The position numbers were made by a program, and so were the translations under genes. A stretch of 64,000 nt of DNA, taken from positions 20,584,001 to 20,648,000 of the forward strand of contig CM119386.1 in assembly GCA_051294905.1 (NCBI GenBank). The letters are read 5' to 3'. Under the pieces are notes generated by a model. It ran no database searches, was not told the DNA's origin, and saw nothing but the letters and a program-made list of their open reading frames with translations. Source of the stretch: Botryllus schlosseri. Lineage: Eukaryota. The number at the start of each line of letters is the position of its first letter. The first letter of the stretch is position 1. Positions 1,280 through 59,740 of this stretch are shown here, piece after piece.

Positions 1280-1964
1280 CAGTGGTTCCCAACCTTTTTG
1301 TTGTCAAGGACACCTTTAGATAATTTATTAATTCTGCGGATCGCTGCCTAGATTTCGCCTGAAATTGAATTAAAATATTATTGACCATTGGAATATTTAT
1401 TCTACTCAAGTACTGTGGGCTAGTGTGTCGAATTGTTGCCGCGGTTGCTGAAATAAGAAAGAACTAACAACAGAACGAACGATCGAACGAAAGAAAAAAA
1501 CTTAAACTAAATGCACCATTGGCACAAAATTAAAAAAATAATAATAATACTAAAATATAGAAACTAGAAGGGAGTTGGAAAATATATAAATAAAGGCAAG
1601 ATAGGCCATGCCGAAACTTTCGCAGCGTGAGCAAATTTGAATAGAAGGCTGTGGCCTGTTGCTGTCTTTCTTGAACTAAACCGCGTGCTTTCTATTTCGT
1701 TGTAGCCGAGCCAATCCTGATTTCATTTTAATTGGCATGGTGGATGCAGTATTGTAGCGTAAGGTCAATGTACGTACGCATCGTAGGTAACAGCATAGTT
1801 ATGCACACCGGTACAGGTAATTCTGGTATGCTTGAGCTTGACACATGTACATTTAAAGAGAGAAATTAAAGTAAAATGATCGCTTTTCGTTTTCTTTTTT
1901 CAAAATTCCGTAAGGTAATCACGGACCCACAAGGGGTAAGTGGACCCCATGTTGCAAACCACCG
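1280..1964. mobile_element. hAT (Charlie-like) non-autonomous MITE, 685 bp
   Basis: Imperfect TIRs CAGTGGTTCCCAAC (1280-1293) and GTTGCAAACCACCG (1951-1964); exact 8-bp TSD AGCTAGAG at 1272-1279 and 1965-1972; no ORF. Confidence 0.85.
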
Positions 1965-2198
1965 AGCTAGAGTGTAAAGTAACACTCGTTTAAATCTTTT
2001 ACCTGCAGTTGAATACTGTGGACTTCCGTTCAAGATGATTGCTACAATTTTTTATCCTTTTACCACATCATATTTACAGATCAGTACACCTTTCAATCGA
2101 AGGGTCGCATATTATATTGCTGTTTAACCGGTGCGCCAAAGCGTAAAGCTCAGCAGTCAGGACTGTGAATCATTTGCAGGATCAATTGGCTAATATAC

Positions 2199-2642
2199 TT
2201 ACGTTTTGGATTGAGACGTAATCTGTACGTTGTTGAAGCCAGGCCTCAACTGTGAATGGATGCTGAAACCCGTGACTGGAACAGTCAGAGTCTCTGGTTG
2301 TTTGGGACTATAAGCAGCTGCGTCATCAGATTTGGCGACTTGCTTAAAGCCAGCATGTTCGTCTAGGAAGGTGACTACTCCAGATGTCATGAGCATCGCA
2401 GCCTCTGATTCGTCACTGAGACGTCGCGTACGCTTTATTACGCTGGGTACGGGTTTGCGGAGGATTAAGTCAGGAACCGTCTGGGGTCGTATGGACGGAT
2501 TTTCAGTCACGGTCAATTCATAGGAGACGTCTTCTGGATTCGAATTGCCGTTTATGTCGCGAGAGTCTGATATGGTCGACCCGTCCTCTTCGCCCGACTT
2601 GAAATCCGGAAGAATCCGGCGTCTTTGCGACAGTCTGTTCAT
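2199..2642 (-). other. Possible host coding exon or decayed ORF (Ser-rich, low complexity)
   Basis: 147-aa ORF in a GC-richer island with a KRTRRLSDES motif; no recognisable domain. Confidence 0.2.
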
Positions 2643-4781
2643 CCGGGAATAAACTCCGCGGGGGCGTTGATGAGACCGTTGGCGAACAGTTCACCTTCGA
2701 TATCGTTGGCAAAGGTATTCTCTAGGTGTTGCGGCAGACCCTTCTTTGCTTTACCTGCAGAATTAGCATCATTAAGTAAGGATCAGTATGACAATACTGA
2801 GTGCGTGAGTGATCCGGTTATGAAGAGAGAATTAGGCTTCGAATCGAGTACTTAACTATCACATATGATGGCGTCGCCACAGTCCCAACGATGCAGAAAG
2901 CTCAAGTATGTACCTTTTATGCGACCTCAAAGAATACAATGGCAGTTCTACATCACATTAAAGATGATTTGGTAAATGACCAACGAATTTTGAAATCGGT
3001 GGATAAAATAATACGTCCAATATCTGCAAAGGTGACAAAAGTGGACAGGCGTCGTGCGTAATCTGAAGGTCGGAGATGTAGTTTGTATATCAAAAGAAAA
3101 TCGTATCCACGGAAACTTGGCGGAGTCGAATCCGTATAATCTCCAGAAAATGGGTTGGTCTGAAAAGCCAGGATACTCGAGGGATGAACAGACTCTATAA
3201 CTATCGGAAAGCCCACATGGAAAGGTCAATACACAAACTCATATCACTAGTTGCAGCAGACTCTCAGTCGGTTAAAACATAACGGTATAGTCGTTCTATT
3301 GAAACGTATTAAGTGTTGCGTTTACTTGGTATGGTGATAGTGGATGAATATTTTGTTAATTATGTATGCTTATCGTACGTATACGTGTCCATAGTAGTAG
3401 TTGGTGGTGTTGTTGTTGTCTGTGGATATGCATGGTGTTTGTCGACTACAATGGTCATTTACACCAGGCCAATATTAATCTTTTTTTTCGTAGCTGCCGA
3501 CTTGTAGCACGGCCCGCTTCTAAGCTTTAATAAGACGCTGCTTACACAGATGTCCATAGTTCCTAATATCCATGTATTTGTGGGTCGATCCCTGACACTG
3601 GGAGCCATTGTTATGTTCATTCGCTTACAAAACCACAATTATTTCGAATTGCATTTTCGTGGAAGCCATGTTATTGCAGGAATCTGCAGGAATATTTAAA
3701 TTTCAATTATAGGCGTCGCGGGATTCGTCTTTTATGTATGTCGATTGGACGTCCCACTTCAATGCAGTCTGGTTTGATGTTGGCGCGATGTTAGTTGCGA
3801 TGTGTCGACAGTCGGCAACAACGACCACGTTCGGGTCGCATGGGAGTAACAGCGACTAAAGTATGATTGCGACTGAAGTATGATTGCGAGAGAGATTTGT
3901 TTGTTTGATATTCATGGTCTGTCGACTACACTGTAAATCTAAAAGGTGGAAAAAATGGTAGGAAAATGGAGAAAGATACTTTCCCTCCATTTATCCACCG
4001 TATCTCCACCAGATATGGAGGAATTTAGAGGGTAGAAAGAGGGAGGAATCAATAGTCTACCATATTTGGTGGAAAACAATTATTGACATGGTGGAAATCA
4101 GAAATGACTGTTCGCAAACTGTCGTATTGCCCAATTAAAACATGACAGTCGATACTGGCTTATAGTTAATAACGTCATCAGACATGAATTTCGAGTCGAG
4201 TGTTGTTTTTTCACTCAATATAAAGTCATAGTCGCATACATTTTGGAATATTGGTAAAATAATTAATATTTCATTTACAAGTGGTTAAGTCAGTAGAGGG
4301 ATTAGTAAATTTGAAAATATCTGAATACTATTAATGGATTGTGATGATTATTTGGAGATCCTGCACGACCGTAGCATATCCAAAACCTTTAACGTATATT
4401 CTTATTGCCAATATCCTCACCAATGAACCGTGACCGGCGGTAATTCAGCATCCGGGACTCTGGCAATTTTGAATGCACGGGGAATCGGGGATATGCGCTC
4501 TCCGTCGTCAGTCAATCTGAGTTAGTCGGTCGACAGAGAAAGATATTTATATTCATTGATTGTGAGTTGATCACAATATGATTATTGTTGATTTTAGTTC
4601 ATAAGTAGCCTAATGTGATTTGCTTAATCGATTTCATATCAAGTACCGGTATCGCTTGTGACTAAAAATCCGGAACTAGTGCACTATACACCAACAATAC
4701 CCGTTCATGGTGATCACTTTATTGACTAAGTATTTTTACACGTCAACCTTTTTCTTTTATAATTCTCTCGAATTTCCATTT

Positions 4782-4980
4782 CATGACTCAGCAGATTTCC
4801 AGTTACGAGGTTTCATTTTTTTCCGTTTACGCCCATTACGTTAAATAATACAGTTAACACCTATTATAAACGATGCACTGCCTTTCATTTATGCTTCTTT
4901 ACATAACTAACTTACCATGACTTAGCATATTTCTAGTTACGAGGTTTCAGTTTTTTCCGTTTATGCCCATTACGTAAAAT
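4782..4980 (-). promoter_or_regulatory. Two ~134-bp-period direct repeats, enhancer-like, downstream of env2 of element A
   Basis: CATGACT(C/T)AGCA...AGTTACGAGGTTTCA...TTCCGTTTA(C/T)GCCCATTACG at ~4782 and ~4916; AP-1-like TGACTCA 4784-4790; minus-strand TATAAAA near 4755-4761 and AATAAA at 4718-4723. Confidence 0.5.
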
Positions 4981-5154
4981 ACTTCACTTGAAACCAATCA
5001 CAAACTATGCATCGCCGGGGTTATTTTTATATTCCCGATGCCTATCACAAGTTTACTTAAGAATTTCCCAAAGTTATAAAATTGCATCTCATACTCCCCT
5101 ATCCTAACTACATAACGAACTTACACCTAACTTCAAGAATCAATTCTCTTACCT

Positions 5155-8100
5155 TCAAATCTCGTTATCCTCTGCTGTGTTTCGTATTACCCTTATCGCC
5201 ATCCATTGACTTGTTCCGTTACGCCTCCTCGTGTTCCTCAGATGACTTAGGGTTCTACGCCGACGACATCTTATACAACCAACCCACAACACAATCACCA
5301 GAGCTATCAACCCTGTTACCACCAATATTACAACCACTGGTTCCATGATAGGTATCAGTTTCGCACCTTCCATAATAATCCTATCGATCAAGGATAATTC
5401 TCTTACCTTATATCCACCTTCCATCATCACCAGTTCGTGCAGCCATCGAGTATAGTTGTAGTCAACGAAATCTGTGGTTGTCTTCCCCGCGGTGGTTCTT
5501 GATATTCGGGAATACTCAGGAGCGGGTGTTCCCAAACTTTGGTTTTTCTGCCCAGGCGGTGGTGACGCGTCAGTCATCGTTGACTCCAAGGTAGTATTCA
5601 TCAGTTCGACACTCCTCGGGGACGAGTCGTCTTTGTCGTCTCCTGTTGAATACAAAGCAGTTGTTCCGGTACTTACCTTACGGTTGTGGTCCGGGCTTTG
5701 GTAGTCCGTTCCGATGTCGGTTCCGTCATCATCTCTGGAGTCCTGCAGCGCGTCTGCAGTGGTAATCGGATGCACTCGCGTTGTTGTGGACACCTCACCG
5801 CTGATTTTCGTCGTTCTTTCGGGTAGGTTACGTGGATTGGTTGGCAACTGTTGCTTCCAATGAGTCGAATAGGTTGGTTTGGCATTGTCATTTTCCCCCC
5901 TTTTTTTAGCCATCGATTGCGATCGCCAAGCTTGCACCAGCGTCGTTTTCATTCGCCATCCTAGAGTTAGAGATGGTAGGTGTCTCAGCGCTGTAGTCTT
6001 TGGTACTGTTGTTGTTAGCCGTTCAACGGTCACCAAATGTGCGACGTCGTCCTCCTGATCCCTTGGAATCTTGCTTGTTTCGGTATAGTTAGGTAGAGGG
6101 CTAGTCGGTATATAGGCAGTTCTATTCGCCTCAGGTGCAGTATTCCCGTCTACATCTCGATCGGAGGAAACCTGGTAGGGAACCGTAGTTCCTGCAAAAC
6201 CGGGCCAATCAGTCTCTTCTAACCTTTGGTCGGTTATTTTCGTTGGCGTGGTGGTCTCGTGAGTCATTTCTCTAGTTATTCTCGCCTCTACCGATTTCCT
6301 TTGTTTCGTCAGTTCTTTTCCCCGTTTCGTGATTACCTGGTGCGTGGGCGGGTACCTTGATAACGACATCTCTTCAGTGGCGGTCGTTACTCCTTCCCAA
6401 GTCAGATGCGGCGTCGGGAGACTGTTTGCTGGTTTCTCTTGCTCACTTGGTGTTACCCCATGTCCATTTTCCCAAGCTTCCATGGTCGTACTACCCACCA
6501 TCATCGAAGTAGTTTGCGGAACTTCGGTGGTCCATGTGGTCCTAACGCGATGGTTTCCACGGTCATCATTTGCGGTTAACATCACCGTTCGAGCGGTGTA
6601 TCTCTCCCCCGCATTATTTCTATGGGCATATGGCGTATAGACCAGGGCACCATCACAAAACGTCCCCCGATAGATCCATCGAGGCTGAAATAACTTTTCG
6701 CTCCCCACTTCTGCCTGAATCAGTTTTTGTGAGGCCATATACTTCAGAAGTATCGTATTCATTGATTTTGCTTGTTCTATTAATGTCGGTCGCAGAGTAA
6801 GGTTATACCTCATGGATAGCTCCTCAAGTTGTCCCCGTGAGACGGGTCTTTCTCGCCGCGTTTCTACGTCTTCTCTTATCCGGGCCTTTAGTTGCGACTG
6901 GCATTTATTTATTTCTTCCACGTAGTGTGCCCCAAGGCGGGATAGCCAGTTTCTAATGCCTCCTCGTCCATGTTCTTCGGGTGTCCCTCGAGACGGGGAT
7001 AGTATAAACGTTTCCCACCCTTTTGAAATCAAGCAGGAACTTTGGTTACCCATGGTTGGTAAAAGTATTTCCGTCCGCGTTCGGTTTTCAGGGGCAGCAA
7101 TTTGCATTGCACCTTGCCGAGGGTCCGCAAACACGGCCTGCCCCTCGAAAGGGTCGAATAATACTCTATTGAATAGTAAGGCTGTTTTGAGATCTCCAAC
7201 AGCCGTTGAACAAACTTGTCTATTTTCCTTTAGTCCGCACCGCGATCTATTATGCAAAAGAACTGGGTAAGAGTCATACATTGCCATGCCTGAAGGTTGG
7301 GGTCTTGCCATCGTGCGTAGGAATGCCGTATCGGTTTTTCGTCCGTCGAACATCACATGCCAATGTTCCGAATATGTCTCGTTCCTTGCTTGTAGCCATA
7401 CCAGATTCTCGCTTATCTTCGGCAGAGGAGCTCTGTCGGGCCATTGATTGCTAGAAAAGGTTCTCCGCTTATCCGGCGGGTTCCCAATAATACCGGGATC
7501 GACTTCCTGTATTACAAAATCTAGGGGCAAGAAATTCTCAACCGGTTGCTCCCCCATGAAGTAGCACTCTATACACATCACTCTACTTCGACGTTTTTTA
7601 TGAGCAACACAATGGCTGAATCTATTCTGTCCGATATCCCATCCTATATGACGCCCGAACTGATAGCGACAATTTGCTTCCACTGTTCCATATTGCTCCA
7701 ACAAGTTTATGATCATTGTCTTATATACGGTTAATCGTTGTAATGTCTCGAGGGGTAGAGAATGCAAGGCTCGGGTTTCTACGTACCTCCAGAGATGTAT
7801 CACTCCCAGTCTGCCGTTGCGTCGGTACTTTATTTTTTGAGTATAGTAGTCCGCAGGGTTCAGATCCGGTGATATCCACGACTCAGTCCTTCTGCACACA
7901 CACTCCCGTTCATACGCCCAGGTTTCGTTCCAATACCTGGCGTTTTGGGATCCTATGGATGATATGGGTGCCAGTAATTTGTATAAACTTTGCGGTGCGG
8001 CTTTCAACGGACCAAACGCCGAGTCGTCAACCTGTATCTGATAGTGACGTTGAATGTCCCTTCGAGGCCAGTCCCCTCCTAACATAAAAAGCCGTGACAA

Positions 8101-8298
8101 GGGAACTCTTTGCGGCTTTGGTGGGACGTCGAAAGGTATCCATCCCGTAAAATTAAAGTCGTCGACGGACCCCACGGTCATGGCAGATAAGGGTAGTAGG
8201 TTTTCGCCAGTTTGGGTTTTCACAAAACAAGCCCACAGGATTAACAGCAGCAATCTTTGTAGTCCTTTCCATTTGTACAGGTAGTTAATTATTGGCAT
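5155..8298 (-). CDS. Second envelope glycoprotein (type I membrane; Env-SU-like N-terminal domain, Thr/Ser-rich mucin-like stalk, C-terminal TM), 1047 aa
   Basis: Signal-like N-terminus (RLLLLILWACFV), Cys-containing ectodomain, Thr-rich region, TM VVVILVVTGLIALVIVLWVGCI, basic tail; homologue at 54969-59432. Confidence 0.85.
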   Translation of the reverse strand: MPIINYLYKWKGLQRLLLLILWACFVKTQTGENLLPLSAMTVGSVDDFNFTGWIPFDVPPKPQRVPLSRLFMLGGDWPRRDIQRHYQIQVDDSAFGPLKAAPQSLYKLLAPISSIGSQNARYWNETWAYERECVCRRTESWISPDLNPADYYTQKIKYRRNGRLGVIHLWRYVETRALHSLPLETLQRLTVYKTMIINLLEQYGTVEANCRYQFGRHIGWDIGQNRFSHCVAHKKRRSRVMCIECYFMGEQPVENFLPLDFVIQEVDPGIIGNPPDKRRTFSSNQWPDRAPLPKISENLVWLQARNETYSEHWHVMFDGRKTDTAFLRTMARPQPSGMAMYDSYPVLLHNRSRCGLKENRQVCSTAVGDLKTALLFNRVLFDPFEGQAVFADPRQGAMQIAAPENRTRTEILLPTMGNQSSCLISKGWETFILSPSRGTPEEHGRGGIRNWLSRLGAHYVEEINKCQSQLKARIREDVETRRERPVSRGQLEELSMRYNLTLRPTLIEQAKSMNTILLKYMASQKLIQAEVGSEKLFQPRWIYRGTFCDGALVYTPYAHRNNAGERYTARTVMLTANDDRGNHRVRTTWTTEVPQTTSMMVGSTTMEAWENGHGVTPSEQEKPANSLPTPHLTWEGVTTATEEMSLSRYPPTHQVITKRGKELTKQRKSVEARITREMTHETTTPTKITDQRLEETDWPGFAGTTVPYQVSSDRDVDGNTAPEANRTAYIPTSPLPNYTETSKIPRDQEDDVAHLVTVERLTTTVPKTTALRHLPSLTLGWRMKTTLVQAWRSQSMAKKRGENDNAKPTYSTHWKQQLPTNPRNLPERTTKISGEVSTTTRVHPITTADALQDSRDDDGTDIGTDYQSPDHNRKVSTGTTALYSTGDDKDDSSPRSVELMNTTLESTMTDASPPPGQKNQSLGTPAPEYSRISRTTAGKTTTDFVDYNYTRWLHELVMMEGGYKVRELSLIDRIIMEGAKLIPIMEPVVVILVVTGLIALVIVLWVGCIRCRRRRTLSHLRNTRRRNGTSQWMAIRVIRNTAEDNEI

Positions 8299-8380
8299 AT
8301 TAATTTAACGTGAAAATCTGTAATTCATATAGTTGTGTTTAGTTAAGCATGAGGGTTAAGAGAGCTTCGTCGGAGATTGG

Positions 8381-10966
8381 TTACCGTCGCACTATGGGCC
8401 TGGGCTTTACGGTGTAAGATGGTGTCGACGTTATATACATTGCAAGTTGGGCGTTAGTGTTCCGCCTTTGTACGCTAGATTTTAACTTGGGACAACATAG
8501 GCTGTGGTACCTGACACAACAGAATAAGATAATCACCGCACCCAGTACAAGTCCCAAGGGGAGGAGGATGGATCCGAGGCCCGAGAAAATGCCACTCAGC
8601 CCACTTCCAAATAGACCTCCAATTGCCCCGAGTCCCTTTTGTAGGAGGTTACCGGCACCGTTTCCGACCGATTCTATCAGACTTCCGGCACCGTTCGCCA
8701 TCTCTTCTATCGTTTTGCCAAAGTTCTTCATAAATTCTTCCCCCCCCCCAGCAAACTCGAAGGGGGCTACTGACACATTCTCGTAGCGCCAATCGGAGAT
8801 ATTTACGAACACACTTCGGTTCAGGTCTTCCTTCCATACCTGTATACTGAGATCCACTTCTTCTTGAGCCTGGTTCAGACGAAGCCTGTTGGCTCGGAGT
8901 TTACCACTGATGTCGTTTGTCTCATTCACATACGTATCTTTATAGGCAGATAACTGCTGAGCATGCTCCTGCACCCGCAATGTCCCTTTCCGAATCTGTG
9001 TAAGATAGACCTTACTCGAATCGAATATGGACTTTCCAGTCAAATTAGCCAATTCTTTCATGACCAAGCGGTCGACGGCAAGTTCAGCGTCGCTCACCTC
9101 TGTGAAACTTTGAAACTGAGCGAGGGTGATGGTAGCCTGCCGCAATATCATTTGTCGGTTTTTCTCCATCATCTTTTGCATCCACACCAGTCGTCTGTCC
9201 GTCAGTGATGCCCTCACCTCCATGTCTTCAACCAATCGGTCCAGCTTTTGTTGCTGCGCCGTTTGAATTCGAGAGAGTTCGTTTATCTTTCTTCCCAGCT
9301 CGACTGATCTTTCCGTAGCCTGGATCATTCTATCGTTGATTTGATTACTCAGGTTCTCTGTTTCTTTATGCAGTTGGGAGGATACAGTTGCGACAACAGC
9401 GACGACTGACACAACGGCAAAGATTAGTGCCAGTAGGCCGAAGAGGAATCGTTTACGTCTACGTTTCCTCCCAATCCTCCTATTATTGCGCGCGATATCT
9501 CCTTTTATTTCTATAGGACCTCCCGGAAAACGGGGTCGGTTATGCTCAGGGTCGAAGTGTACCTGATCCCAAAAGGCCGCCTTCAACTGAGGCCCCCCGA
9601 CCGGATCCTGACAGTCGCTACCACTTACCCGTTTCTGACACCTAGGATCATCTGCAACCAAAGAGGGGTGCTTTCGCCAAACAGGCAGTATGTCGTAGGG
9701 TGCGACTGGTCTTTCGGCAGGTCCGTCGAACAAATTATCCCAACCAAGCCCTTGGTCATCTTGACCCTTCCAGTTCGGTAAGGACGCCTGTATCCATCTA
9801 ATCCTTCGAGGAAAATTCGTGGTGGGCAAGTCCCCCCACTTACTCTTGTTCTGAGTCGGCCAAAGATTACACGATGGAGGATGCGCGATGTTGCGTAGGC
9901 CCTTACCGGATAAGGTTGGTGAGTGATGGACGACCTGCCAACGGTGTTCATAGTTTTCCTGGGTGATCAGTCCTGACGTAGCTCGGCAGTTCTGCATAGG
10001 ATGCCACTTACGTTCCCATGCGGATTCCGCACGAATGGTATCTATTTCTTGTATTATTATGTCTGCTTGGCTCGGTTCTAAAGCAGAAATTATCCCTGTG
10101 ATATCACAAAAAACACAGGTGCCGCGTGAACCTGGCCTTGACGACACCAGGCGTTTGTCTGACGTGCGAGTCTTCCAGTCGTAGGTTATTGAATATGTTC
10201 CGGCCCAAAGCACGTTACTCGGCCAACAATGCGCAATGCTCGAGCTACTGGCGTTATATTTATTCCATCGATCAACCCGAGTCCAGTTCCAGGTATCTTT
10301 TGTCATGCGCTCTGTCCTGCAAGTCGATCTCACCGCTGAGAACCCCGCGAATGCTCGTAACATGATCAACTTGAATTTGGTCATTGCCATTAAGGTATCG
10401 TTCACATGAGACCACTCGTCCACTTCAGCCCCAGCCTTCCATTTCTGCCTAGACGTTTCCCAGGTCTCGTCCCAAAACCACCGTATCCTGACCCCATGCC
10501 CTATTGGGCGTACGAACACAGTTTCTTGGTCAAGAACGGCAAAGGTTAGGTTCGGCGAAATTTCGCTTAGTTTTCGTTGGCATAGGCAGGTTCGTTCAAA
10601 ATCCCGTACATTCGACCAATATCGCCCTCGCGGGAACGCCATTTGCTGCAATGACACCCGTTCGGCCACCACGTAACCGAAAGATTCACTATGAAAGAGT
10701 GTTGGTCGCCTGTACACGTGACGATTCCCTGTCTTATTGAAAGCGCTCATTAGGTCGTAGGTTTCCCATTGCGTATCATTCAGCCGAACCCAGTCGTCAG
10801 GTAGTGAGCCGTTGAATTCACCCAGGGTACCCTGAGTAAAGGTTCGGGCCCTGTTTGCTACAGTATCTCCGGATCTTGGCACGAAGTCCGCCGCCTCAGA
10901 CAACAAGCAATCAGATGTGCAACTGAAACCAATAATGACAGGCAGAATATAAATAGCGTAGTCCAT
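8381..10966 (-). CDS. env: Envelope fusion glycoprotein, class I-like (SU / furin site / fusion peptide / heptad repeats / TM), ~861 aa
   Basis: True ATG at 10966 (MDYAIYIL aligns with MDHAAYIL of element C; the track start at 10993 is TTG). Signal peptide, N-glycan sequons, RKRRRKR|FLFGLLALIFAVV, long heptad region, Gly-rich membrane-proximal segment, TM, Cys-rich tail. Confidence 0.9.
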   Translation of the reverse strand: MDYAIYILPVIIGFSCTSDCLLSEAADFVPRSGDTVANRARTFTQGTLGEFNGSLPDDWVRLNDTQWETYDLMSAFNKTGNRHVYRRPTLFHSESFGYVVAERVSLQQMAFPRGRYWSNVRDFERTCLCQRKLSEISPNLTFAVLDQETVFVRPIGHGVRIRWFWDETWETSRQKWKAGAEVDEWSHVNDTLMAMTKFKLIMLRAFAGFSAVRSTCRTERMTKDTWNWTRVDRWNKYNASSSSIAHCWPSNVLWAGTYSITYDWKTRTSDKRLVSSRPGSRGTCVFCDITGIISALEPSQADIIIQEIDTIRAESAWERKWHPMQNCRATSGLITQENYEHRWQVVHHSPTLSGKGLRNIAHPPSCNLWPTQNKSKWGDLPTTNFPRRIRWIQASLPNWKGQDDQGLGWDNLFDGPAERPVAPYDILPVWRKHPSLVADDPRCQKRVSGSDCQDPVGGPQLKAAFWDQVHFDPEHNRPRFPGGPIEIKGDIARNNRRIGRKRRRKRFLFGLLALIFAVVSVVAVVATVSSQLHKETENLSNQINDRMIQATERSVELGRKINELSRIQTAQQQKLDRLVEDMEVRASLTDRRLVWMQKMMEKNRQMILRQATITLAQFQSFTEVSDAELAVDRLVMKELANLTGKSIFDSSKVYLTQIRKGTLRVQEHAQQLSAYKDTYVNETNDISGKLRANRLRLNQAQEEVDLSIQVWKEDLNRSVFVNISDWRYENVSVAPFEFAGGGEEFMKNFGKTIEEMANGAGSLIESVGNGAGNLLQKGLGAIGGLFGSGLSGIFSGLGSILLPLGLVLGAVIILFCCVRYHSLCCPKLKSSVQRRNTNAQLAMYITSTPSYTVKPRPIVRR

Positions 10967-11112
10967 TGAGGTGGTATAGGCGTCGGTCCCCAATGCATAG
11001 GCTTACTATTTTATATTGAATATGATTTAATTATTGTCTGCAAAAATAGAAACATACATTGTCCGGTTTGTGGCTAACTTCCTTTCTTTATTGCGAAAGG
11101 CTTCACTGGGCT

Positions 11113-12074
11113 TTACTGAGGATTACCTTGTGTGTCAGGAATCTGATCACTAGGGTCGTCATTATTATACCGCGGGTCCAGAGATATCGTTTTCAACAGA
11201 GCCCCAAACCTTTTTTTACGGGGGTATCTTCTCTTCCAAAGCCACTCCCCCACATAATCGGCTAGTAAATGACGTGCTAGACCCCTCGATCTGTGTAAAT
11301 GATATTTCAGCGAGCTCCAGCAAGCCTCTAAATCATTGGTATGAACGCCCTGGGCAGATTTAAACGTGGTGGCGTGGTCAACTGATCCATGTTTATAGCC
11401 CTGCCCCCAACTTTCAATGCCCTTATACGATGGATAGCCATCTGTCAGAATGGTTGAACCTCTGGCTACATTCTTAATTATAAGTCTTTTCAGAACGTCC
11501 GCTGTTCGGTCAGATGTGATCTCCACAAACATGTCACCGGTACCTCGGTCCAGGCCACCGAAAGCCCAGACAGCCTTCACTGCTTGTTGACCGCTACCAG
11601 CTGCCCGTTTCCGCTTGGCCAAGTGGGTTTCGTCCAGGATTACAGTTCGGCCAACCCCGCCTAATTTCCGTTTACGTCTTTGTATGTAAGCAGAGCACAT
11701 CTTGCGCAGTTGTCCAGACCATTCTACCGTCGTACGTGCGCTGATCTCGGCCTCATGGGCCATTTGAATTTGTAGAGAGTCTTGGGCCCAAAAATAACTT
11801 AATACTAGCAGCTGGGGCAATCCAAGTTTGCTCTTTGAAAAAAATGAGTACTTGCGGATAGTAGCAGTGGTCCTACAAGATGAGCACCTCCATCTCCATC
11901 CGTCCGAAATTCTCTCGGTAGTCCGTTCTTCCTTCATCCATCTTGAGCATTCTCTGCAAATCATTTGTTTTCTCAGTAGACCCCGGCTTCTTAAAAAAGG
12001 GATGCAATCGCGTGTATGGGGTAAGGCTCCCATTTCCACCAATCGCAGCACATTGTAATCCTCGACGAAGGAGT
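11113..12074 (-). CDS. Merlin/IS1595 (ISXO2-like) DDE transposase, probably expressed from a spliced mRNA
   Basis: Zinc ribbon CREC...WRWRCSSC; catalytic motifs VILDETH, ILTDGYPSY, VDH, HTNDLEACWSSLK. ORF-track start 12099 is TTG inside a polypyrimidine tract ending CAG at 12077-12075. Confidence 0.9.
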
Positions 12075-12161
12075 CTGAAAAGTAAATAAAAAAGTACAAG
12101 TTCCTTTAACGATCGATCACTCCCCAGCAGTTAAATCTCGACGGCAGCGTCACCCTGCATC

Positions 12162-15100
12162 CTAGGCCAGGTTCTCCATCAGTATATACCCTGACGGTAT
12201 TGGCCCTTCGCACAGTATTACCTCGTGATTATGCGACTGTAAGAGTCGTAGACCTATCCTTCTGAGGTCGTTCGCCCTCATTCTCAGAACCGTTCTACGC
12301 CCACGTGCCTTTGTTGTGTTAATCTTACTCAAATGGATGAACCGTCGGTTCATTCTGTGTAGTTGGGTATCAATGATTTGACGGGCACCTTCGTCCGTCG
12401 TTGTGTGATACAGCATGTCATCGCCTAGGTACTCTTCGTATGGGGGTGGCATCCCTTTGGTGTGCCCGTGCGCTGCAGCCAGGCCTTCACCGGACATCAC
12501 TGCCCTGTCGCAATTGGCCATGATATCCTCAATTTCAGTTATCCCGAGGTCTTGTCGCAACTTGTCTTTGATTATTCCGCGAACTTCTTCCCAGGGGTGG
12601 TATCCATCGACAGAGTTTGCGCAATACTCGTGCCGACAGTGGAACATCAGGGTTCGCTGTATTTTCTCTTGTTGAAATTCTTTGTGTCCCGGGAGGGTGG
12701 CCCAGACATGAGGGTCATCATCTCTAGCAGCCATTTCCATCCAATAGGATCGGGACAATCCATCTGAAGTAAACACTTGGAACGTGCTCAAATGGATTAC
12801 CTCTTTTATCTGGAATCCGGAGAGATGATTTAGCCACCTTTGAATCAATGGCTTTGGGCTCGGGTTTTTTGCCTCATCTGTCATTCTTTTCAGGAGTCCA
12901 AAAACTCCCATGTTGTCAGTAATTATAGTGAAGGGTAAGGCGCGCAGCATCGACTGCCATTTCTCCACTGAATCCTTCAGGGCTTTAAGCTCTTTGGTGC
13001 ATGGGTCATAGGCTTTCGCCGTCGGAGTTACCCACTTTTGACTGTAGTAAGCGATCGGATACACCTCTTTGAAAGGGGGTTTTTCCCCCACATCCGTTTG
13101 AAAAATTACGGAGCCAAACCCTACATCTGATGCGTCAGTTTCCACAAAAATGGGAAGTCCTGGATCCAGATGATACAGTACCTTGGCACTGTCGAGTGCA
13201 GCTTGAGCTGTTTTGTAGTCCTGCAATAATTCTTCGGTCCAAAGCACCGGTGTCATTTTACCTCGAGTCGCTGGGACTTTTCCCGTTAGCGCATCAAATT
13301 TTGCCAACTTCAAGCTTAACTCTGGGATGTGCTCCGAGATGTAGCGCAGAGCGCCAATCCATCCTCGTAATTCGTATATATTTCGGGGTGGCGAAAGCTC
13401 CCGCAGAGCCCTTATTCTCTCAGGCTGGACCTCGATTTCTTTTCCCGTCAAGGTCGCTCCTAGGAGATTTGCCCTCCGTTTTCCAATAAAGCATTTATTG
13501 ATGCTGAGCGTCAATTTCATTTTAGCAAGCTGTTCAAATACCAACCGTAGGAGAAGCAAATGGTCGTCTACCGTTTTTGTGCTAAGGAAAATGTCGTCTA
13601 TGTAGGCCTCCATAGGCGTCGCATTCTCCTCATCCGATCGGCCATTTTGCTTCATGCGTTGGCGATACTTTTCCGTGATGGGTTTCACCGCGCATTCTTG
13701 CATGTTAGCGCTCCAAAGGGCAACTGCGGTCTTCAATCCCATCACAATCTTGCGCCATCTTACGTGCATTCCTTTGATGGCTATTCCCACATATTGCTTG
13801 GATCTTTCCGTGATATCCATGTGGAAATAGGCTTTCTTCAAATCCAGCAGGGAGAGCACTTCTCTTCCCTGGGCGAGTTGTTTTACATCTGGTACTAAGG
13901 GTGGAGGGACTTCGATTGACTTTATAGCAGCGTTCAGGGGCTGGAGATTCTGTACGACTCTCCATGATTGCTTCCACCCGTCCTCCTGCTTCTGTCTTTC
14001 ATTCATTTTTTGTGGGACGACAAAGATGGCCAGTTTCCATTCGGCAAATCCTTGCTCAATTATTCCCAGGTCCAAGAAGTTGTCCACTGCTTCTTTTAAC
14101 GCCTTCGCCTGGCCCTCCCCTTTCAGATTATAAGGTCCAGAAACAAAAGGCTTAGTCGAGGGATCCCTGAGTTCTATGTCACACTTATACTTCATGGCTT
14201 GAGGGGCTCGTAAGTGGCCACGCAGGTCCTCTAGTTCAGCTGCGAAAGGCTCATAGACGGCTTTCCAAACTTCGTCGGCAATGATGGTATTTTCCGGGGT
14301 CGTTAGATCAGGAGGTTTGTATGGAAGTTTCGCTAGTGCTACCGATTGTGCACAGAGACTTTCGAGATCCGTCTTAACGCTAAGACTGGTACCTTGTTGT
14401 AAGGTGTACGTGGTAACAGGGCCAATTATCGGCCGATGCGAATCACGTGAAAAACGGGGTTTTGGTGTTGGTGGAGAGGGGGCGAGGTTCTTCGTTGTCA
14501 GCGGGGATTCCCTACCTATCCAATCTGACCTCTGAACTCGGTGCGTGCCCACACCTACCGTCACGCCGACGGACTCAATCTCCGCCGGGGGCCCTGTTTC
14601 TGGGGAGACGTGCATCTTAAAATCCCCAGACTCCTTGTCGGACGCGCCTGGACCTACGTCCGGTTGACCGACAATAGCTGCTTCGTTTGAACCTTTTGGG
14701 AAGTTACTCATAACTGTGGCTGTCGTCCTGCATCTTTGGGCCGAATTATTACAGTTATTCGGGCAAGTGCATCCACGAGAGCTTTCAGGACCAGTTTTCT
14801 CGTGCAGGTCCTTATTTACGTCAGCCGGGATTCCGCGCTCGACGTCTTCATTAATAGTGCCAGCAGGGATTCCTGTCTCGACACTAGGGGTTTCCCGTAG
14901 GTTTCTCTCGACGTTAGTGGTATTTACCAACCCGTCGTCCGCGCCAGTGGCGATTGCCATCTCGACACTTGCGTCAGCGGCGACGGCCGGCAATAATGAC
15001 CGGCGCGCCGACTCGACGCTTATCTGATTTGCAGCTTCCATCAACCCATCGTCGGTAGCAGCGTTGCAAGGACTGTTTCCGACTCTGGTTCCATCCCGTC

Positions 15101-15632
15101 GATCGCACGAGATCTCGTCATGTAGTGTTACTAAAGACAACTCTTCGTTTGCATTAGACGGAGTTTTGAATTCAGTCGTTATGTTCGGTAATTGTTGTAC
15201 CTGATCAATCCATTTTAACCCAATAATATTGAGAGGGACTCCTTTCCCGGTTGCAAATGGAACCGGTAGTCCATCGAAATCAATTATTACCAAGGAGTCA
15301 ACGTGGGAAGAGCCCCCTATGCCGCGTAATTTCATGTCTAGGGGTTGTCGCTCCTCCCAGCTTCGTGGGTATTTGGTCTTAACAACACTTTTCATTATTA
15401 AATTGGGGATGCTTCCCGTGTCGGCCAAGAATTTAGTTTCCGTTGTGGTGTCAACCAAATACAAGAGCCGACCGCCGAATAATTCCGTAAAGTCTGGCTG
15501 TAGTGGGTTATCCGGTGTATCAAGAAATGTAAATAGGGGTAGAGAAGCATTATGTACAGTTTTTGCGTGTTGGGGTAATAAGTTATCTGGGAGCTGATTT
15601 ACCGGATCAATCAGCACCCCCAGTCGTTTTTT
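12162..15632 (-). CDS. pol: Pol: aspartic protease, spacer, reverse transcriptase, RNase H, C-terminal Tpt1/KptA-like domain; no integrase
   Basis: FLADTGS protease motif; RT WRVVQNLQPLN, LLDLKKAYF, YIDD; Ty3/gypsy-type RNase H VETDASDVG...KELKAL...TDN...DGLSR; final ~167 aa match Tpt1 motifs; no HHCC or DD35E integrase. Entered by -1 frameshift from gag. Confidence 0.93.
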   Translation of the reverse strand, partial: KKRLGVLIDPVNQLPDNLLPQHAKTVHNASLPLFTFLDTPDNPLQPDFTELFGGRLLYLVDTTTETKFLADTGSIPNLIMKSVVKTKYPRSWEERQPLDMKLRGIGGSSHVDSLVIIDFDGLPVPFATGKGVPLNIIGLKWIDQVQQLPNITTEFKTPSNANEELSLVTLHDEISCDRRDGTRVGNSPCNAATDDGLMEAANQISVESARRSLLPAVAADASVEMAIATGADDGLVNTTNVERNLRETPSVETGIPAGTINEDVERGIPADVNKDLHEKTGPESSRGCTCPNNCNNSAQRCRTTATVMSNFPKGSNEAAIVGQPDVGPGASDKESGDFKMHVSPETGPPAEIESVGVTVGVGTHRVQRSDWIGRESPLTTKNLAPSPPTPKPRFSRDSHRPIIGPVTTYTLQQGTSLSVKTDLESLCAQSVALAKLPYKPPDLTTPENTIIADEVWKAVYEPFAAELEDLRGHLRAPQAMKYKCDIELRDPSTKPFVSGPYNLKGEGQAKALKEAVDNFLDLGIIEQGFAEWKLAIFVVPQKMNERQKQEDGWKQSWRVVQNLQPLNAAIKSIEVPPPLVPDVKQLAQGREVLSLLDLKKAYFHMDITERSKQYVGIAIKGMHVRWRKIVMGLKTAVALWSANMQECAVKPITEKYRQRMKQNGRSDEENATPMEAYIDDIFLSTKTVDDHLLLLRLVFEQLAKMKLTLSINKCFIGKRRANLLGATLTGKEIEVQPERIRALRELSPPRNIYELRGWIGALRYISEHIPELSLKLAKFDALTGKVPATRGKMTPVLWTEELLQDYKTAQAALDSAKVLYHLDPGLPIFVETDASDVGFGSVIFQTDVGEKPPFKEVYPIAYYSQKWVTPTAKAYDPCTKELKALKDSVEKWQSMLRALPFTIITDNMGVFGLLKRMTDEAKNPSPKPLIQRWLNHLSGFQIKEVIHLSTFQVFTSDGLSRSYWMEMAARDDDPHVWATLPGHKEFQQEKIQRTLMFHCRHEYCANSVDGYHPWEEVRGIIKDKLRQDLGITEIEDIMANCDRAVMSGEGLAAAHGHTKGMPPPYEEYLGDDMLYHTTTDEGARQIIDTQLHRMNRRFIHLSKINTTKARGRRTVLRMRANDLRRIGLRLLQSHNHEVILCEGPIPSGYILMENLA

Positions 15633-18484
15633 GAGAGTCTCAAGCCTTGTTCTAGTTCCTCATCCGTCCAATGCGAGGCGTCATAGCGACGTGGAGGACG
15701 GCGATATAGCGGTTCCGTCCAGGCCACTTGGCTATTGCCCTGGTTCGGTTGTTCAGGTGGGCCCTGAGGACCCCACTGATCCCTATCATGCCAGTGGGTT
15801 CTATCTCTATTTTTTGGCCTAGAGTCATAATAGGCCTCGCACAAGGCAGTTCTCTGTGTCAGAGAGGGAGAACCTTGGGTGGCAAGGTATCGGTCGAGGT
15901 CCGGGACCGTCAATATGTTATTCCTTGCAAGGAAAGGCTCCCAGTTGCGTTTTGTGGACTCCTTAACGCGTGGGGGTACCGGTCGTATTCGTTTGCGAAC
16001 TACCCAACCTAAGGTATCATCCTTGGCAATCACCTCCTCATTTAGCCAAAGCACGAATTTTGCCACGCAATTACGGGATTGGTGTCCCGGGGCCTTACAA
16101 TAATAACATACGGATAAGGACTGCCCCTGAGGGGGGTTCAGATACAAGCCTAGAGGGGCGAAAATGTTGGGGTTCCCAAGAAAATTATACCTCTCACCTT
16201 GGCTCTCCGCGATGCGGAGGGCTTCCTGACTGCTAGACGGCGTGATTTCCTGGCTGTCCCCGCCGATTCCAGAGTCCTGCGTATTCATCACCCGAGGTCT
16301 CCGGTTCGAAGTACTTGGCCCCTGACTTGTTTGAGGAGATCTGGAGTTCCGTGCTGGTGGAACGCTCGGTCCATTCGATGCGTTGCGCCCATTTTGTGTT
16401 CGGGAAGGTTTGGCCCTGGTAGCCGGGCCCTGTCTGCCAAATCCATTTCCACTCATTACATTGGTAGGAAAACGGTTGGTCTTTGCGCCGCGAGGAGGGC
16501 CACGTCGTGGCTGCGAAGCTTGCCCGACGCCGACGGGCTGCCGTGGCGACATATTCCCCGTCGGTCTGGGTGGTGTCCCCCCGATCATGTGCAGAGGTTG
16601 TTGGGGTGAGGGTGGTTGCACCATCGGAAGTGGTGGTGTAGTCGGTGGAGGAGGGGTGTTTATTCGTTCATCTCCACCCCCGTGAGTAGGGTAACTGTGC
16701 ATCATGGGTCCTGCAGGCTGAACATTATATATGTGTACAGGCGGTAGGGGCGACATTGCTTCACGCGTCTTTCTGGCCTCCCGAGTGGTGGGTCGTACCT
16801 CTTGTTCATCCAAGAACTCAGAATTCCAGTACAGCTGCAAATCCTCTGCCACCTCTTGCCAGGACCTGCTATCCCATCCCCGCATCAGCAGTCTAAGTGC
16901 TTCTGGTAATCGTTGTCTTAGGTTGCGGAAAAGTCGCAGCCCATCCGGATTCTCGTTGATTTCCGCCTCCATATCTATCTCTAGTTGCTTTAGGGCGCTA
17001 TTCAACAGCGGAAGAGGTTCGTCTTCCCACTGATAATTCCTCCGGAAGTCGTTGATGACTTTTTCATTGTTAACCAAGCCTTGCGGGTTGGATAGCGACA
17101 ATGATTTCATGACCGAAACCCATTTTGCATTTCCCGAGTTGGTGTTGAAGAAATTCCCTAGCTGATTAGCTTGTTTGAGGCGACCCGCACTTCTCAACTT
17201 CTTCTGCATGGCATTAGCCAGGATGATATCAGTATCAGTGCCGCCCTCACCGTGTCGTATACGCCTCATCGTATTAGCCATCCACTTTAGAAGTGGCATG
17301 TCCCCAGGGTCCATCATTAGCTGTAGCATCTCCTTTTCGGACTGGAACCTTTCGGGCGTAGTCAACACCGGGTTTACGGCATCATTCCGTGGTTGTTCTC
17401 GCGGAAGTCTCGATCTACCTTCGCTTTCTCTTGGGGTAGATGTGTATCGAGGTAATCTGAGGTATTCAGCGATGTCCGAAATATCCTCTGCGGGTTCGCT
17501 TGGGTTGGGCCGACCAGAGTCCCGTTGAAGCGTCCGCGTGGTTTCCCGAATGGCCTCCCGTGCCTCCGCTATTTGTCTACCCAATCTGTCCAATTGGGCG
17601 TCAGTATCTTCCCCCGAGTCTTCAGGCTCTTCGCTTTCGCCTTGTCGGTAGTTCGTTCTCCCTTCCTGAAAGGTAACGCGCCTTGTTGGAGTGCTGGCCG
17701 CACCTTGTGTCCTGGTCCGGGTTCCTTCGGCTGCTCGTTGATCGTCGAGCCATGCGCCGAGCCGTTCTCGAGCGTGTGCATAGTCCTCGTCTGAATCTGG
17801 TCCAGTGTCTGTTCCGGTTCCACTCAGCTGAAATAGACTGGGTGTATCGACTAGGCTCCCCCTTCGTCTTTCGGGGCGTGTCCCATTCCAAACTGGAAAG
17901 CATGGAGTCGTTTTTGGATGAGAATCTGATGGCGACTTCGGCTTGGAACCTGGCAACGTAGGGTAGACTGTCGTTACGGTATGGCAATCCAGGCCCTTTT
18001 GGACTGTAAACGTGGGCAGTGGCGCTGTTGCCCTGGACGATTTCCCAACGGGCGGATCATACGCCGGGGGAGGTGCTGTAGCCATTACGGACAGGGGAGA
18101 AGGTGGTGGTGGTTTACTTTCAACCACTTGGGCATGGGCTTTGCCCAGTTCAAATTCCGATTTCAGAATCTCACTGAGGACTTCAGTGGAGACTTTCCCG
18201 CTAACCTTCGAAGTTGCATCGCATACTGCTTTGAGGTCGGCTTGAGCTCGCCTGACTTCTTTCTTGGCTTTTTCCAGCCCCTTCATTGTCTCGGGCAGAG
18301 TTGATTTGACTTCTTTTAGTACCTTCGTTTGATCAGCCACGTCTTTTGCCAACTGTCTTTCTTGTTGTCTGACGCCTTCGTGGCGTTTTTGCGTGGCTTT
18401 CAGTAGCTTGATGCCCTGCTCGAGCTCGCCTGCCGCCTTTGACGACTTATTCTTCTTTTTAAATAATTTTAGCATTTTTCGCAT
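15611..18484 (-). CDS. gag: Gag polyprotein, 957 aa
   Basis: Upstream of and overlapping pol; basic N-terminus, coiled coil, PPAY and YPTL late-domain-like motifs, single CCHC knuckle CYYCKAPGHQSRNC. Confidence 0.9.
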   Translation of the reverse strand: MRKMLKLFKKKNKSSKAAGELEQGIKLLKATQKRHEGVRQQERQLAKDVADQTKVLKEVKSTLPETMKGLEKAKKEVRRAQADLKAVCDATSKVSGKVSTEVLSEILKSEFELGKAHAQVVESKPPPPSPLSVMATAPPPAYDPPVGKSSRATAPLPTFTVQKGLDCHTVTTVYPTLPGSKPKSPSDSHPKTTPCFPVWNGTRPERRRGSLVDTPSLFQLSGTGTDTGPDSDEDYAHARERLGAWLDDQRAAEGTRTRTQGAASTPTRRVTFQEGRTNYRQGESEEPEDSGEDTDAQLDRLGRQIAEAREAIRETTRTLQRDSGRPNPSEPAEDISDIAEYLRLPRYTSTPRESEGRSRLPREQPRNDAVNPVLTTPERFQSEKEMLQLMMDPGDMPLLKWMANTMRRIRHGEGGTDTDIILANAMQKKLRSAGRLKQANQLGNFFNTNSGNAKWVSVMKSLSLSNPQGLVNNEKVINDFRRNYQWEDEPLPLLNSALKQLEIDMEAEINENPDGLRLFRNLRQRLPEALRLLMRGWDSRSWQEVAEDLQLYWNSEFLDEQEVRPTTREARKTREAMSPLPPVHIYNVQPAGPMMHSYPTHGGGDERINTPPPPTTPPLPMVQPPSPQQPLHMIGGTPPRPTGNMSPRQPVGVGQASQPRRGPPRGAKTNRFPTNVMSGNGFGRQGPATRAKPSRTQNGRNASNGPSVPPARNSRSPQTSQGPSTSNRRPRVMNTQDSGIGGDSQEITPSSSQEALRIAESQGERYNFLGNPNIFAPLGLYLNPPQGQSLSVCYYCKAPGHQSRNCVAKFVLWLNEEVIAKDDTLGWVVRKRIRPVPPRVKESTKRNWEPFLARNNILTVPDLDRYLATQGSPSLTQRTALCEAYYDSRPKNRDRTHWHDRDQWGPQGPPEQPNQGNSQVAWTEPLYRRPPRRYDASHWTDEELEQGLRLSKNDWGC
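15626..15632 (-). promoter_or_regulatory. -1 ribosomal frameshift heptamer A AAA AAC
   Basis: X XXY YYZ heptamer in the gag frame five codons before the gag stop; pol is in the -1 frame; identical heptamer at 50408-50414 in element B. Confidence 0.85.
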
Positions 18485-18528
18485 AGTTTATGTAACTTTT
18501 GTTTGTCTGTATTTTGGTCCCGTACCTT

Positions 18529-18864
18529 TTATTGGCTAGGGGAAGTACCGTTACGAAGTAGATTACCCACGGTCGCGGTTTTGTTGTTTTCGATCACTCG
18601 CCCTTGCGTTGTAGGTGCGGAATACCTTCCGAAGATAACTGGGTCGGTCTCGTTGGCGATTGCCACAGCAAATCCGTTACGTGGGACAGTAAGTGCTTCG
18701 GCCGTTGTAGTGACGTCGTTAGAGAGACCTTCAGGGTTTGTAGTAGGAAAGAATACCGGCACGAGGTGTACGTAGACCGACGCCAACGTTATTAGCAGAG
18801 ATATAGCAGAAGTGATTACTGTCACTCCGAGCACGATTCTCACGAGGGTCGTCTTCGCGCACAT
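18529..18864 (-). CDS. Small leader ORF, putative type II membrane glycoprotein, 111 aa
   Basis: ATG start just downstream of the PBS; hydrophobic anchor at aa ~7-39; sequons NET, NKT, NGT; stops 45 nt before the gag ATG. Confidence 0.6.
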   Translation of the reverse strand: MCAKTTLVRIVLGVTVITSAISLLITLASVYVHLVPVFFPTTNPEGLSNDVTTTAEALTVPRNGFAVAIANETDPVIFGRYSAPTTQGRVIENNKTATVGNLLRNGTSPSQ

Positions 18865-19128: not shown

Positions 19129-19305
19129 CGTGTAATTAAGCCTTAATACAACCAAATACTCCAATAAATATCATGCAGACAGAATGAGGTATCTAAGCAA
19201 AACTCGGTTAAATTGGCACATAGAATATCCATCAATTATAACACAAGATAAAGCTTAAACCTATTCATATTCATGCACGATTAAATGTATTTTAAATACT
19301 CCAAG

Positions 19306-19521
19306 GTTTGTTTTCGCATACAAACTATGCGACGGCCTTTCCTGCCGAAGTGGTATCTTTCAGGGTTTGTTAACACATAATTAATGTGACGGCCTTTCCT
19401 GCCGTAAAATCTCATAGGTTTGTTTACACATATAATGCATGTGACGGCCTGTCCTGCCGTAAAGCAGCTCCGAGGTTAGTTTACACATCTAATGAATGTG
19501 ACGGCCTTTCCTGCCGTAAAG
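19306..19521. repeat. Four ~56-bp tandem repeats, enhancer-like
   Basis: Unit GGTTTGTTTACACAT...ATGTGACGGCCTTTCCTGCCGTAAA; cores at ~19330, 19387, 19441, 19498; contains forkhead-like TGTTTAC and ETS-like TTCCTG. Confidence 0.85.
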
Positions 19522-27009: not shown

Positions 27010-27054
27010 AAACTGCTATACTGCTCTCACTGCAAACGCAACCCACACTAAAAA

Positions 27055-50100: not shown

Positions 50101-50414
50101 CCTTGTAAATTCATACGCAACGAACACCGCCTTCGCCAACTATTGGGATAAGCTAATCTCGCCATTGACGACATCATCAAATTTGGCACGCTTCCTGTAT
50201 CTGCTAAAAAATTTACATTAGTATTTATATCGACTAGGTACATCAATTCACCCCCAAAAAGCTTTGCGAAATTACATTCATCAGAATCTTTAATTTCCCC
50301 AAACATACTAAATAACGGTAATGACAAATTATTTATTATTCTCATAGTTCTATGTGGTAATAGTTCGTCTGCACACTGGTTCAAAAAATGACCCAGTGTA
50401 GCTAACCGTTTTTT
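47191..50414 (-). pseudogene. pol: Element B pol (PR-RT-RH-Tpt1-like) with a 1-nt frameshift near 49022-49030
   Basis: Collinear with element A Pol: FLADTGS, WRVVQNLQPLN, YIDD, VETDASDVG, HCRH...LFHIT...MNRRYIHF; WTQ(aa)WRVV lacks one base relative to WKQSWRVV. Confidence 0.9.
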
Positions 50415-50960: not shown

Positions 50961-51235
50961 AGTAAACGCCGTAGACTTACACGGCACCTGTGTGAAACAT
51001 GAAAACATCGGCGTGTGCAGTGTTTTACCAGTAAATGAACAATGCTGTACTTGAACATCGAAAATATGGGCATTAGATTCACTAGGTCTCATATGGAACA
51101 AGTGAATTAAACACCCTGACCTACCTATAGCACGGGGACAAATAAGAGAGAATTGATTAGTGAAGCGCGGCCGAGAAAAAGGCGGTTCCTCGCAAACCTA
51201 CGACCCACGAACACCGTATCATTCCACTTCTGCAG

Positions 51236-59732: not shown

Positions 59733-59740
59733 TATATAAA
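59733..59740 (+). promoter_or_regulatory. TATA box candidate
   Basis: TATATAAA preceded by three TGACGC and CACTTCCG motifs (59685-59725). Confidence 0.5.

Follow-up and report, generated by a model that had tools for sequence, protein, structure and literature searches.

A retrovirus-like element of Botryllus schlosseri that lacks an integrase and carries a Merlin-type transposase gene between pol and env

The mode of insertion is the main basis on which retroelements are classified, whether it uses a DDE integrase, a tyrosine recombinase, or an endonuclease of the apurinic/apyrimidinic (AP), restriction-enzyme-like (REL), or GIY-YIG type. A stretch of 64,000 nucleotides from Botryllus schlosseri (assembly GCA_051294905.1, contig CM119386.1, positions 20,584,001–20,648,000 of the forward strand; hereafter “the window”) carries a retrovirus-like element, copy A, with the gene order small membrane open reading frame (ORF)-gag-pol-transposase-env1-env2 (5155–18864, minus strand; all ORFs intact). 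The fourth of these genes encodes a DNA transposase of the IS1595/ISXO2 (Merlin) type, and pol contains no recognizable integrase. The locus raises the question of whether the transposase is a gene of the element or a passenger in it, and, if it is a gene of the element, whether it inserts the element into the chromosome. The evidence given below supports the view that the transposase has long been an integral gene of a retrovirus-like element without an integrase and has been kept by selection. That it also carries out insertion into the chromosome, in an element of a clade that would already have lost its integrase, is a reading to which we give about an even chance.

The transposase ORF matched the Pfam family PF12762 (DDE_Tnp_IS1595) with an E-value of 3.3e−13 (50 bits, against a cut-off of 27) and the NCBIfam model NF033547, “IS1595 family transposase,” with an E-value of 1.5e−20 over profile positions 2–212 of 215 (74 bits, against a cut-off of 75). 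It is a divergent member of the IS1595/Merlin family. Residues D156, D220, and E258 were unchanged in 11 of 11 aligned transposases and in seven close copies, and the N-terminal cysteine pairs (CxxC...CxxC) were present in every copy covering that region (P0004 and P0005 are truncated at the N terminus). The N terminus itself gave only weak zinc-finger matches, and the Pfam IS1595 zinc-ribbon family was not matched. When a structure was modeled with AlphaFold from the 11-sequence alignment (mean predicted local distance difference test score [pLDDT], 80), its best matches in the PDB were retroviral integrases and the Mos1 transposase; the protein is accordingly predicted to have an RNase-H-like, integrase-like DDE fold. 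The ORF lies 62 nt beyond the end of the pol ORF (12162) and 119 nt before the start of env1 (10993), and a scan of positions 10800–12400 for terminal inverted repeats (TIRs) around it returned only short inverted repeats at chance level. The mobile unit is not a Merlin transposon; neither TIRs nor a target-site duplication (TSD) was found for it. The original prediction, made from the letters of the window, had described an intact ISXO2-like transposase with D-D-E motifs about 60 nt past the pol stop and about 120 nt from env1, lacking TIRs of its own; all of this agrees with the open frame of 328 codons, the PF12762 match, the invariant triad, and the measured distances.

The close lineage of the element is known from the window and three sequencing runs (SRR25569773, SRR25569780, and SRR25569784), and six copies of the transposase could be compared: those of copies A and C in the window and those of the public contigs L001–L004, all of which are 7 kb or shorter. 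All six run for about 300 codons without a stop, and env1 follows the transposase in six of six. The 7-kb contig L001 has the order pol-transposase-env1-env2, as in copy A. Between copies A and C, the transposases are 69% identical in protein and 67% in DNA sequence, with the motifs kept, which is in line with the two-thirds identity first noticed for the gene preceding env1 in C; env1 is 70% identical. The nonsynonymous divergence (dN) of the transposase ranged from 0.04 to 0.39, and the synonymous divergence (dS) was saturated for most pairs. Where the ratio could be computed, dN/dS was 0.04–0.07, compared with 0.10–0.13 for env1 and 0.11 for gag. The comparison of dN/dS between copies had been proposed as a check, and the values obtained are far from about 1. 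The family-level match to ordinary IS1595/Merlin transposases would be shared by a passenger, that is, a Merlin transposon nested in the retroelement, or by an assembly chimera. However, the ORF has no TIRs and leaves only the two short gaps to its neighbors, and six copies, taken from four independent assemblies and saturated at silent sites, all have it in this position. We therefore rejected this explanation as highly improbable. The earlier claim that the transposase is not a recent passenger is borne out by the six open copies in the same position, the saturated silent sites, and a dN/dS of about 0.05.

A search of 5.8 billion proteins with the transposase returned five close relatives at 60–68% identity, from two sequencing runs; beyond these, the best match was only 31% identical. 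This nearest outsider (P0006) belongs to an ordinary 2-kb single-gene transposon with 99-nt inverted repeats, and the element-borne transposases are 55–92% identical to one another. Contig collections from metagenomes and viruses, when scanned with the transposase, gave no match. Because mutual identity within the element is so much higher than identity to any outsider, and because P0006 sits in an ordinary TIR-flanked transposon, the simplest reading to which the sequences point is that the gene was captured once from a Merlin-type transposon and has since co-evolved with the element over a long time.

Conservation of the transposase begins ahead of any ATG, and no ATG position is common to the lineages. 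A pyrimidine tract followed by CAG, resembling a splice acceptor, lies at the start of the ORF; the CAG is invariant, and in six of six copies the distance from it to the start of the conserved codons is exactly 17 nt, which keeps the phase constant. Each copy would thus have to receive one nucleotide of its frame from an upstream exon. In copies A and L001, env1 is likewise preceded by an acceptor-like site. Given the absence of a conserved start codon and the constant phase of the acceptor-like site, the transposase is most likely translated from a spliced subgenomic RNA, with the ATG supplied by the upstream exon. A fusion of pol and transposase through read-through or frameshifting was considered and discarded, since the two ORFs are in different frames and are separated by stop codons.

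The Pfam domains of pol are a reverse transcriptase (RT; RVT_1) and an RNase H (RT_RNaseH). Neither an rve domain nor any other integrase domain was matched in pol by Pfam or by comparison with solved structures, and Gypsy-type integrase probes taken from P0021 had no match in the window or in any related locus fetched, in agreement with the original prediction that pol lacks an integrase. No protease was recognizable in the pol ORF, and no tyrosine recombinase family was matched by Pfam in the large ORFs of the element. The nearest solved relatives of pol were an “enzymatic polyprotein” (8r0s_A; best match, E = 2.4e−16), which we take to be a caulimovirus RT, foamy-virus Pol, and Ty3. What had been overlooked at first is that the integrase slot is occupied: amino acids 985–1137, within approximately the last 170 residues of pol, form a Tpt1/KptA-like domain. 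PF01885 was matched at 24–42 bits in copies A and B and in P0010, P0011, and P0018, weakly in A and above the cut-off in B, and a profile of three copies searched against the PDB retrieved solved RNA 2′-phosphotransferases (E = 3e−8), in an alignment that spans only the C-terminal two thirds of the domain. Structure prediction of the pol C terminus from the single sequence was not usable (pLDDT, 40). The domain was also found in copy B and in the loci L001, L005–L008, and L012. We found no report in the literature of a Tpt1-like domain in a retroelement or its pol. As judged by these matches, a putative Tpt1-like domain, with the fold of an RNA 2′-phosphotransferase or nucleic-acid ADP-ribosyltransferase, is conserved throughout the integrase-less RT-RNase H pol clade.

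The extent of this clade was apparent from an exhaustive, profile-free search with pol, which found proteins at 37–48% identity with RT, RNase H, and Tpt1-like domains and without an integrase (P0010, P0011, P0012, and P0018); more distant matches were ordinary gypsy-type polyproteins with an integrase. Since the whole clade, including its transposase-less members, lacks an integrase, the loss of the integrase would have preceded the capture of the transposase or been independent of it. Integrase loss thus appears to be a property of the whole RT-RNase H-Tpt1 clade, and no one-step swap is indicated. Among the relatives, L006 (ENA ERZ22157276, ctg12771l; 721–6727) has a complete AP-endonuclease-like (Exo_endo_phos) domain after the Tpt1-like part of pol (E = 1.9e−18; profile positions 1–225 of 225), and its next gene encodes an envelope protein with a match to alphavirus E1 (PF01589, E = 5e−19). 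L007 has an env1 homologue and no recognizable nuclease, and L008 and copy B have a non-coding 3′ region after pol and neither transposase nor env. The nuclease or recombinase module, as predicted from its domains, differs between lineages, and transposase and env appear to have been acquired and lost jointly. The AP-endonuclease-like domain of L006 suggests that the slot after the Tpt1-like domain is where the clade places a DNA-cutting enzyme. Copies without transposase and env may be dependent derivatives; copy B is truncated and broken.

In the reading that we favor, the transposase would have been captured once from a Merlin-type DNA transposon, losing the terminal repeats of its source, and would then have evolved within the element, linked to the env module. 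It would cleave and join DNA, inserting the reverse-transcribed DNA of the element into the chromosome, which is the role of the integrase in retroviruses. Several observations weigh against this role. First, relatives without the transposase exist (L005, L006, L007, L008, L012, and copy B), and it cannot be needed universally in cis. Second, the transposase tracks env1 rather than pol: the values for A and C given above are nearly equal (69% and 70%), and between copy A and L001, pol is 72% identical, the transposase 58%, env1 32%, and env2 25%. Its function could serve an env-bearing way of life and not integration. Third, no TIRs or TSDs were found at the ends of copy A, which leaves the proposed reaction without evidence of a substrate. 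Fourth, no direct repeat joins the regions upstream of gag and downstream of env2 in copy A as long terminal repeats (LTRs) would, and a 3′ LTR may lie beyond the edge of the window. Of the outcomes named beforehand as contrary to the prediction, neither a canonical integrase in other copies nor TIRs belonging to the transposase were found, and copies lacking the transposase were. The proposal that a cut-and-paste transposase had replaced the integrase consequently survives in part: the gene belongs to the element and the integrase is absent, whereas a one-step exchange and a TIR/TSD type of substrate find no support.

The ends of the element were sought by repeat finding, self-BLAST with word sizes of 11, 9, and 7, an nhmmer profile of the 3′ region described below (region X), and motif scans. 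In copy A, the 7.5 kb that precede gag and the 5 kb that follow env2 shared no direct or inverted repeat, and L007 contained no long-range repeats. Two cross-matches within the window (23845–24044 with 63588–63790, and 207–294 with 44115–44202) are weak, look like unrelated interspersed repeats, and were set aside. The TSDs of 8–9 bp and short TIRs that had been suggested as a check on element ends were not found, and the ends were not located.

The absence of LTRs from copy A and L007 would also fit a transposase that only nicks the target, with reverse transcription or DNA joining primed at the nick as in long interspersed nuclear elements (LINEs). In function, the enzyme would then correspond to the AP-endonuclease-like domain of L006, and no TIR-bounded DNA would undergo strand transfer. 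The full Exo_endo_phos domain in the pol of L006 speaks for this, as do the 5′-truncated copies (B and the first copy in L006) and the conserved region X that comes behind the final ORF of A, B, and L008. However, none of the three DDE residues required for strand transfer has been lost, X is not followed by a poly(A) or simple-repeat tail, and a relative carries a primer site of the retroviral kind. In the contig L011 (Logan SRR25569773), positions 3–20 are a perfect 18-nt match to a tRNA-Pro primer-binding site. One paper lists this 18-mer as an oligonucleotide that pairs with the 3′ end of tRNA-Pro, and another gives it as the primer-binding site of murine leukemia virus. In L011, a gag 50–61% identical to that of copy A follows it at a distance of about 180 nt; the 18-mer is absent from the 64-kb window. 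On this basis, the family seems to use tRNA priming, and its reverse transcription would be retrovirus-like even though the integration enzyme differs. We regard target nicking as unlikely. The contig begins 2 nt before the primer site, a break suggestive of a repeat boundary. Scanning the window and the loci for Rfam families and tRNAs gave no match.

Region X and the arrangement of copies B and C bear on the element ends as well. In A, B, and L008, the final ORF is followed by X; in the C lineage, X precedes the transposase. The diverged X of copy A matched the region after pol in L008 (E = 6e−9). X was rejected as an LTR of copy A, upstream of whose gag nothing X-like was found; it may instead be a transposon end. 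A motif, GGWACWAGTGMA(N8)CC, is repeated in it: the X of B has two direct GGWACWAGTGMA-type motifs, that of C has two direct motifs and an inverted one abutting the second with a 5-nt gap, and that of A has one direct motif at its start and one inverted at its end. The near-palindrome so formed in the C lineage (51068–51116) is kept in L002–L004. If the element has a protein-binding or end/junction sequence, this motif is the strongest candidate; no terminus or duplication could be linked to it, and the flanks of possible motif pairs did not match. In copy B, gag lacks its first ~770 codons and its homology ends at 50950, and the pol frame is interrupted once, by what looks like a frameshift. 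L002 and L003, from two different runs, begin exactly at the position matching 50950, and L004 continues there into unrelated sequence. Inverted copies of X flank B, which lies head to head with the C unit (46100–51215), a layout that could reflect either a nested insertion or a rearrangement. An inversion was also entertained as its origin and was rejected because X is found on both sides. Copy C, first described as an element, is not a full one; it has no colinear pol and adjoins the inverted, 5′-truncated gag-pol of B. That B is the pol partner of C is unlikely, since its pol is 56% identical to that of A, as against 69–70% for the transposase and env1 of C.

The layout of the copies can be explained in yet another way, namely that the element resembles a pararetrovirus, with an episomal DNA genome copied via RNA and incidental or host-mediated integration. 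The transposase would then be accessory, serving occasional endogenization, the movement of integrated copies at the DNA level, or a DNA-binding or regulatory function tied to an env-bearing infectious form. Copies stand head to tail in L006 (two copies, 99.9% identical, the first lacking about 1.26 kb of gag) and head to head or rearranged in B/C; LTRs were not found; the best solved match of pol is the presumed caulimovirus RT; the transposase was gained and lost with env; and promoter-like TATA boxes directly follow the final ORF of C and L006. In contrast, purifying selection is stronger on the catalytic residues of the transposase than on gag or env, and the window contains neither a terminal redundancy nor a copy of more than unit length, nor anything else that would indicate an episome. 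We consider this explanation quite improbable. Promoter-like repeats with TGACG-type motifs followed by a TATA box occur upstream of the small ORF of A, downstream of env2 of C, and downstream of env in L006, and a second promoter-like arrangement lies 1.3 kb past the first in C (60434–61070, plus strand). Such sequences fit either a U3-like region or a circular genome.

Table 1. Positions in the window of the features of copies A, B, and C
Feature	Position	Strand	Description
Copy A			
57-nt tandem repeats	19293–19520	minus	Upstream of small ORF
TATA-like box	~19126	minus	Upstream of small ORF
Small ORF	18529–18864	minus	111 aa; a membrane-spanning segment; upstream of gag
gag-like ORF	15611–18484	minus	957 aa; N-terminal coiled coil, CCHC zinc knuckle
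pol ORF	12162–15617	minus	1151 aa
RT domain of pol	~13449–13985	minus	
RNase H domain of pol	~12813–13241	minus	
Tpt1/KptA-like domain of pol	~12207–12665	minus	
Acceptor-like site	12075–12098	minus	Pyrimidine tract and CAG; splice-acceptor-like, read from sequence
Transposase ORF	11113–12099	minus	IS1595/ISXO2 (Merlin-type) DDE transposase; 328 codons, open
Putative zinc-ribbon Cys pairs	~aa 48–75	minus	In transposase
DDE domain	11233–11625	minus	Transposase aa 159–289
env1	8381–10993	minus	870 aa; signal peptide, basic furin-like site and hydrophobic stretch, coiled coil, C-terminal membrane anchor
env2	5155–8298	minus	1047 aa; signal peptide, env1-paralogous N-terminal domain, Ser/Thr-rich middle, membrane anchor
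Region X	4672–4996	minus	Diverged; after env2; internal 134-nt duplication, AATAAA
Copy B			
Copy B	46100–50950	minus	5′-truncated gag-pol without transposase or env
Tpt1-like domain	47194–47850	minus	
Spacer	46382–47197	minus	816 nt; after pol
Region X	46100–46381	minus	After spacer
Copy C			
Region X	50950–51215	plus	~265 nt; upstream of transposase
Transposase ORF	51160–52176	plus	338 codons, conserved from codon 32
env1	52296–54884	plus	
env2	54969–59432	plus	1487 aa; Ser/Thr-rich middle 440 residues longer than in A
Promoter-like motifs	~59680–59740	plus	Three TGACGCA motifs and TATATAA box; 300 nt downstream of env2

The remaining genes of copy A are those of an env-bearing retroelement (Table 1). 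Full-length homologues of gag were found in P0160 (65% identity) and P0161 (50%). The small ORF has a homologue of 100 amino acids in L010 (15–317; 37% identity), where it likewise precedes gag and where an extra ORF of 110 codons lies between the two. The features of env1 were read from its translation; the N-terminal domains of env1 and env2 are paralogous, at approximately 22–27% identity. Neither protein matched a Pfam family or a solved structure by sequence, and a search with the C terminus of env2 found nothing. Elsewhere in the window, a LINE-like element occupies 26179–29967 (plus strand), its ORF1 ending in a baculovirus-FP-type domain and its ORF2, with an AP endonuclease and an RT, being divided between two ORFs. 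A separate ORF at 44607–45698 (plus strand) has a cellular-type RNase H domain (PF00075), and two adjacent ORFs of 184 and 188 amino acids (61722–62276 and 62425–62991, plus strand), whose C termini look paralogous, are unrelated to the genes of the element.

No retroelement with an IS1595/Merlin transposase came up in our search of the literature. If the transposase does insert the element, a gag-pol-env element with a selected Merlin-type transposase would add another solution to those by which retroelements are classed, and the integration module of a virus-like retroelement would be exchangeable across transposon classes; the sister lineage with an AP endonuclease and the common Tpt1-like domain strengthen the case. 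It is possible, although we lean slightly against it, that these elements represent an undescribed class of env-bearing reverse-transcribing elements that lack an integrase and LTRs, have a Tpt1-like domain in pol, and carry an exchangeable nuclease or recombinase module, a Merlin-type DDE enzyme here and an AP endonuclease in the sister lineage. The finding bears on the origin of retroviral integrases from DNA transposons and on viral endogenization. For repeat annotation, it implies that tools requiring LTRs and an integrase domain miss or split such elements. The Tpt1-like domain in an RT polyprotein poses a separate question.

Compared with known systems, the transposase shares with those of Merlin/IS1595 transposons (ISXO2 and IS1016) the PF12762/NF033547 domain, N-terminal cysteine pairs of a putative zinc ribbon, and the D-D-E residues with an HTN..E motif; unlike them, it has no TIRs, TSD, or start codon of its own and lies between pol and env. 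Env-bearing Ty3/gypsy-like elements (errantiviruses of the Metaviridae, and Retroviridae) similarly have a CCHC gag, RT-RNase H, env-like genes past pol, and acceptor-like sites before the downstream genes, and the tRNA-Pro site in the relative L011 is a further likeness. In contrast to them, the present element has no integrase, detectable LTRs, or recognizable protease, and has a Tpt1-like domain and a separate DDE transposase. Resemblance to LINEs with an AP endonuclease lies in the Exo_endo_phos domain in the pol of L006, in the 5′-truncated copies, and in the conserved 3′ region of the family; however, the RT is of the Ty3/gypsy, caulimovirus, and foamy-virus type, and the family has gag, env, and, in L011, a tRNA primer site but lacks a poly(A) tail. 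DIRS-like elements have a tyrosine recombinase in place of an integrase and unusual terminal repeats. They provide a parallel as gag-pol retroelements in which an unrelated recombinase stands in place of the integrase and the ends are not LTRs, although here the enzyme is a DDE transposase and no split direct or inverted terminal repeats were found. Teratorn, in medaka, is a herpesvirus-like element fused with a piggyBac transposon. It is likewise virus-like, and its integration module is a cut-and-paste DDE transposase, the role proposed here for the Merlin-type enzyme; Teratorn, however, is a DNA virus within piggyBac TIRs, whereas the present element is reverse-transcribing and no TIRs were found for it.

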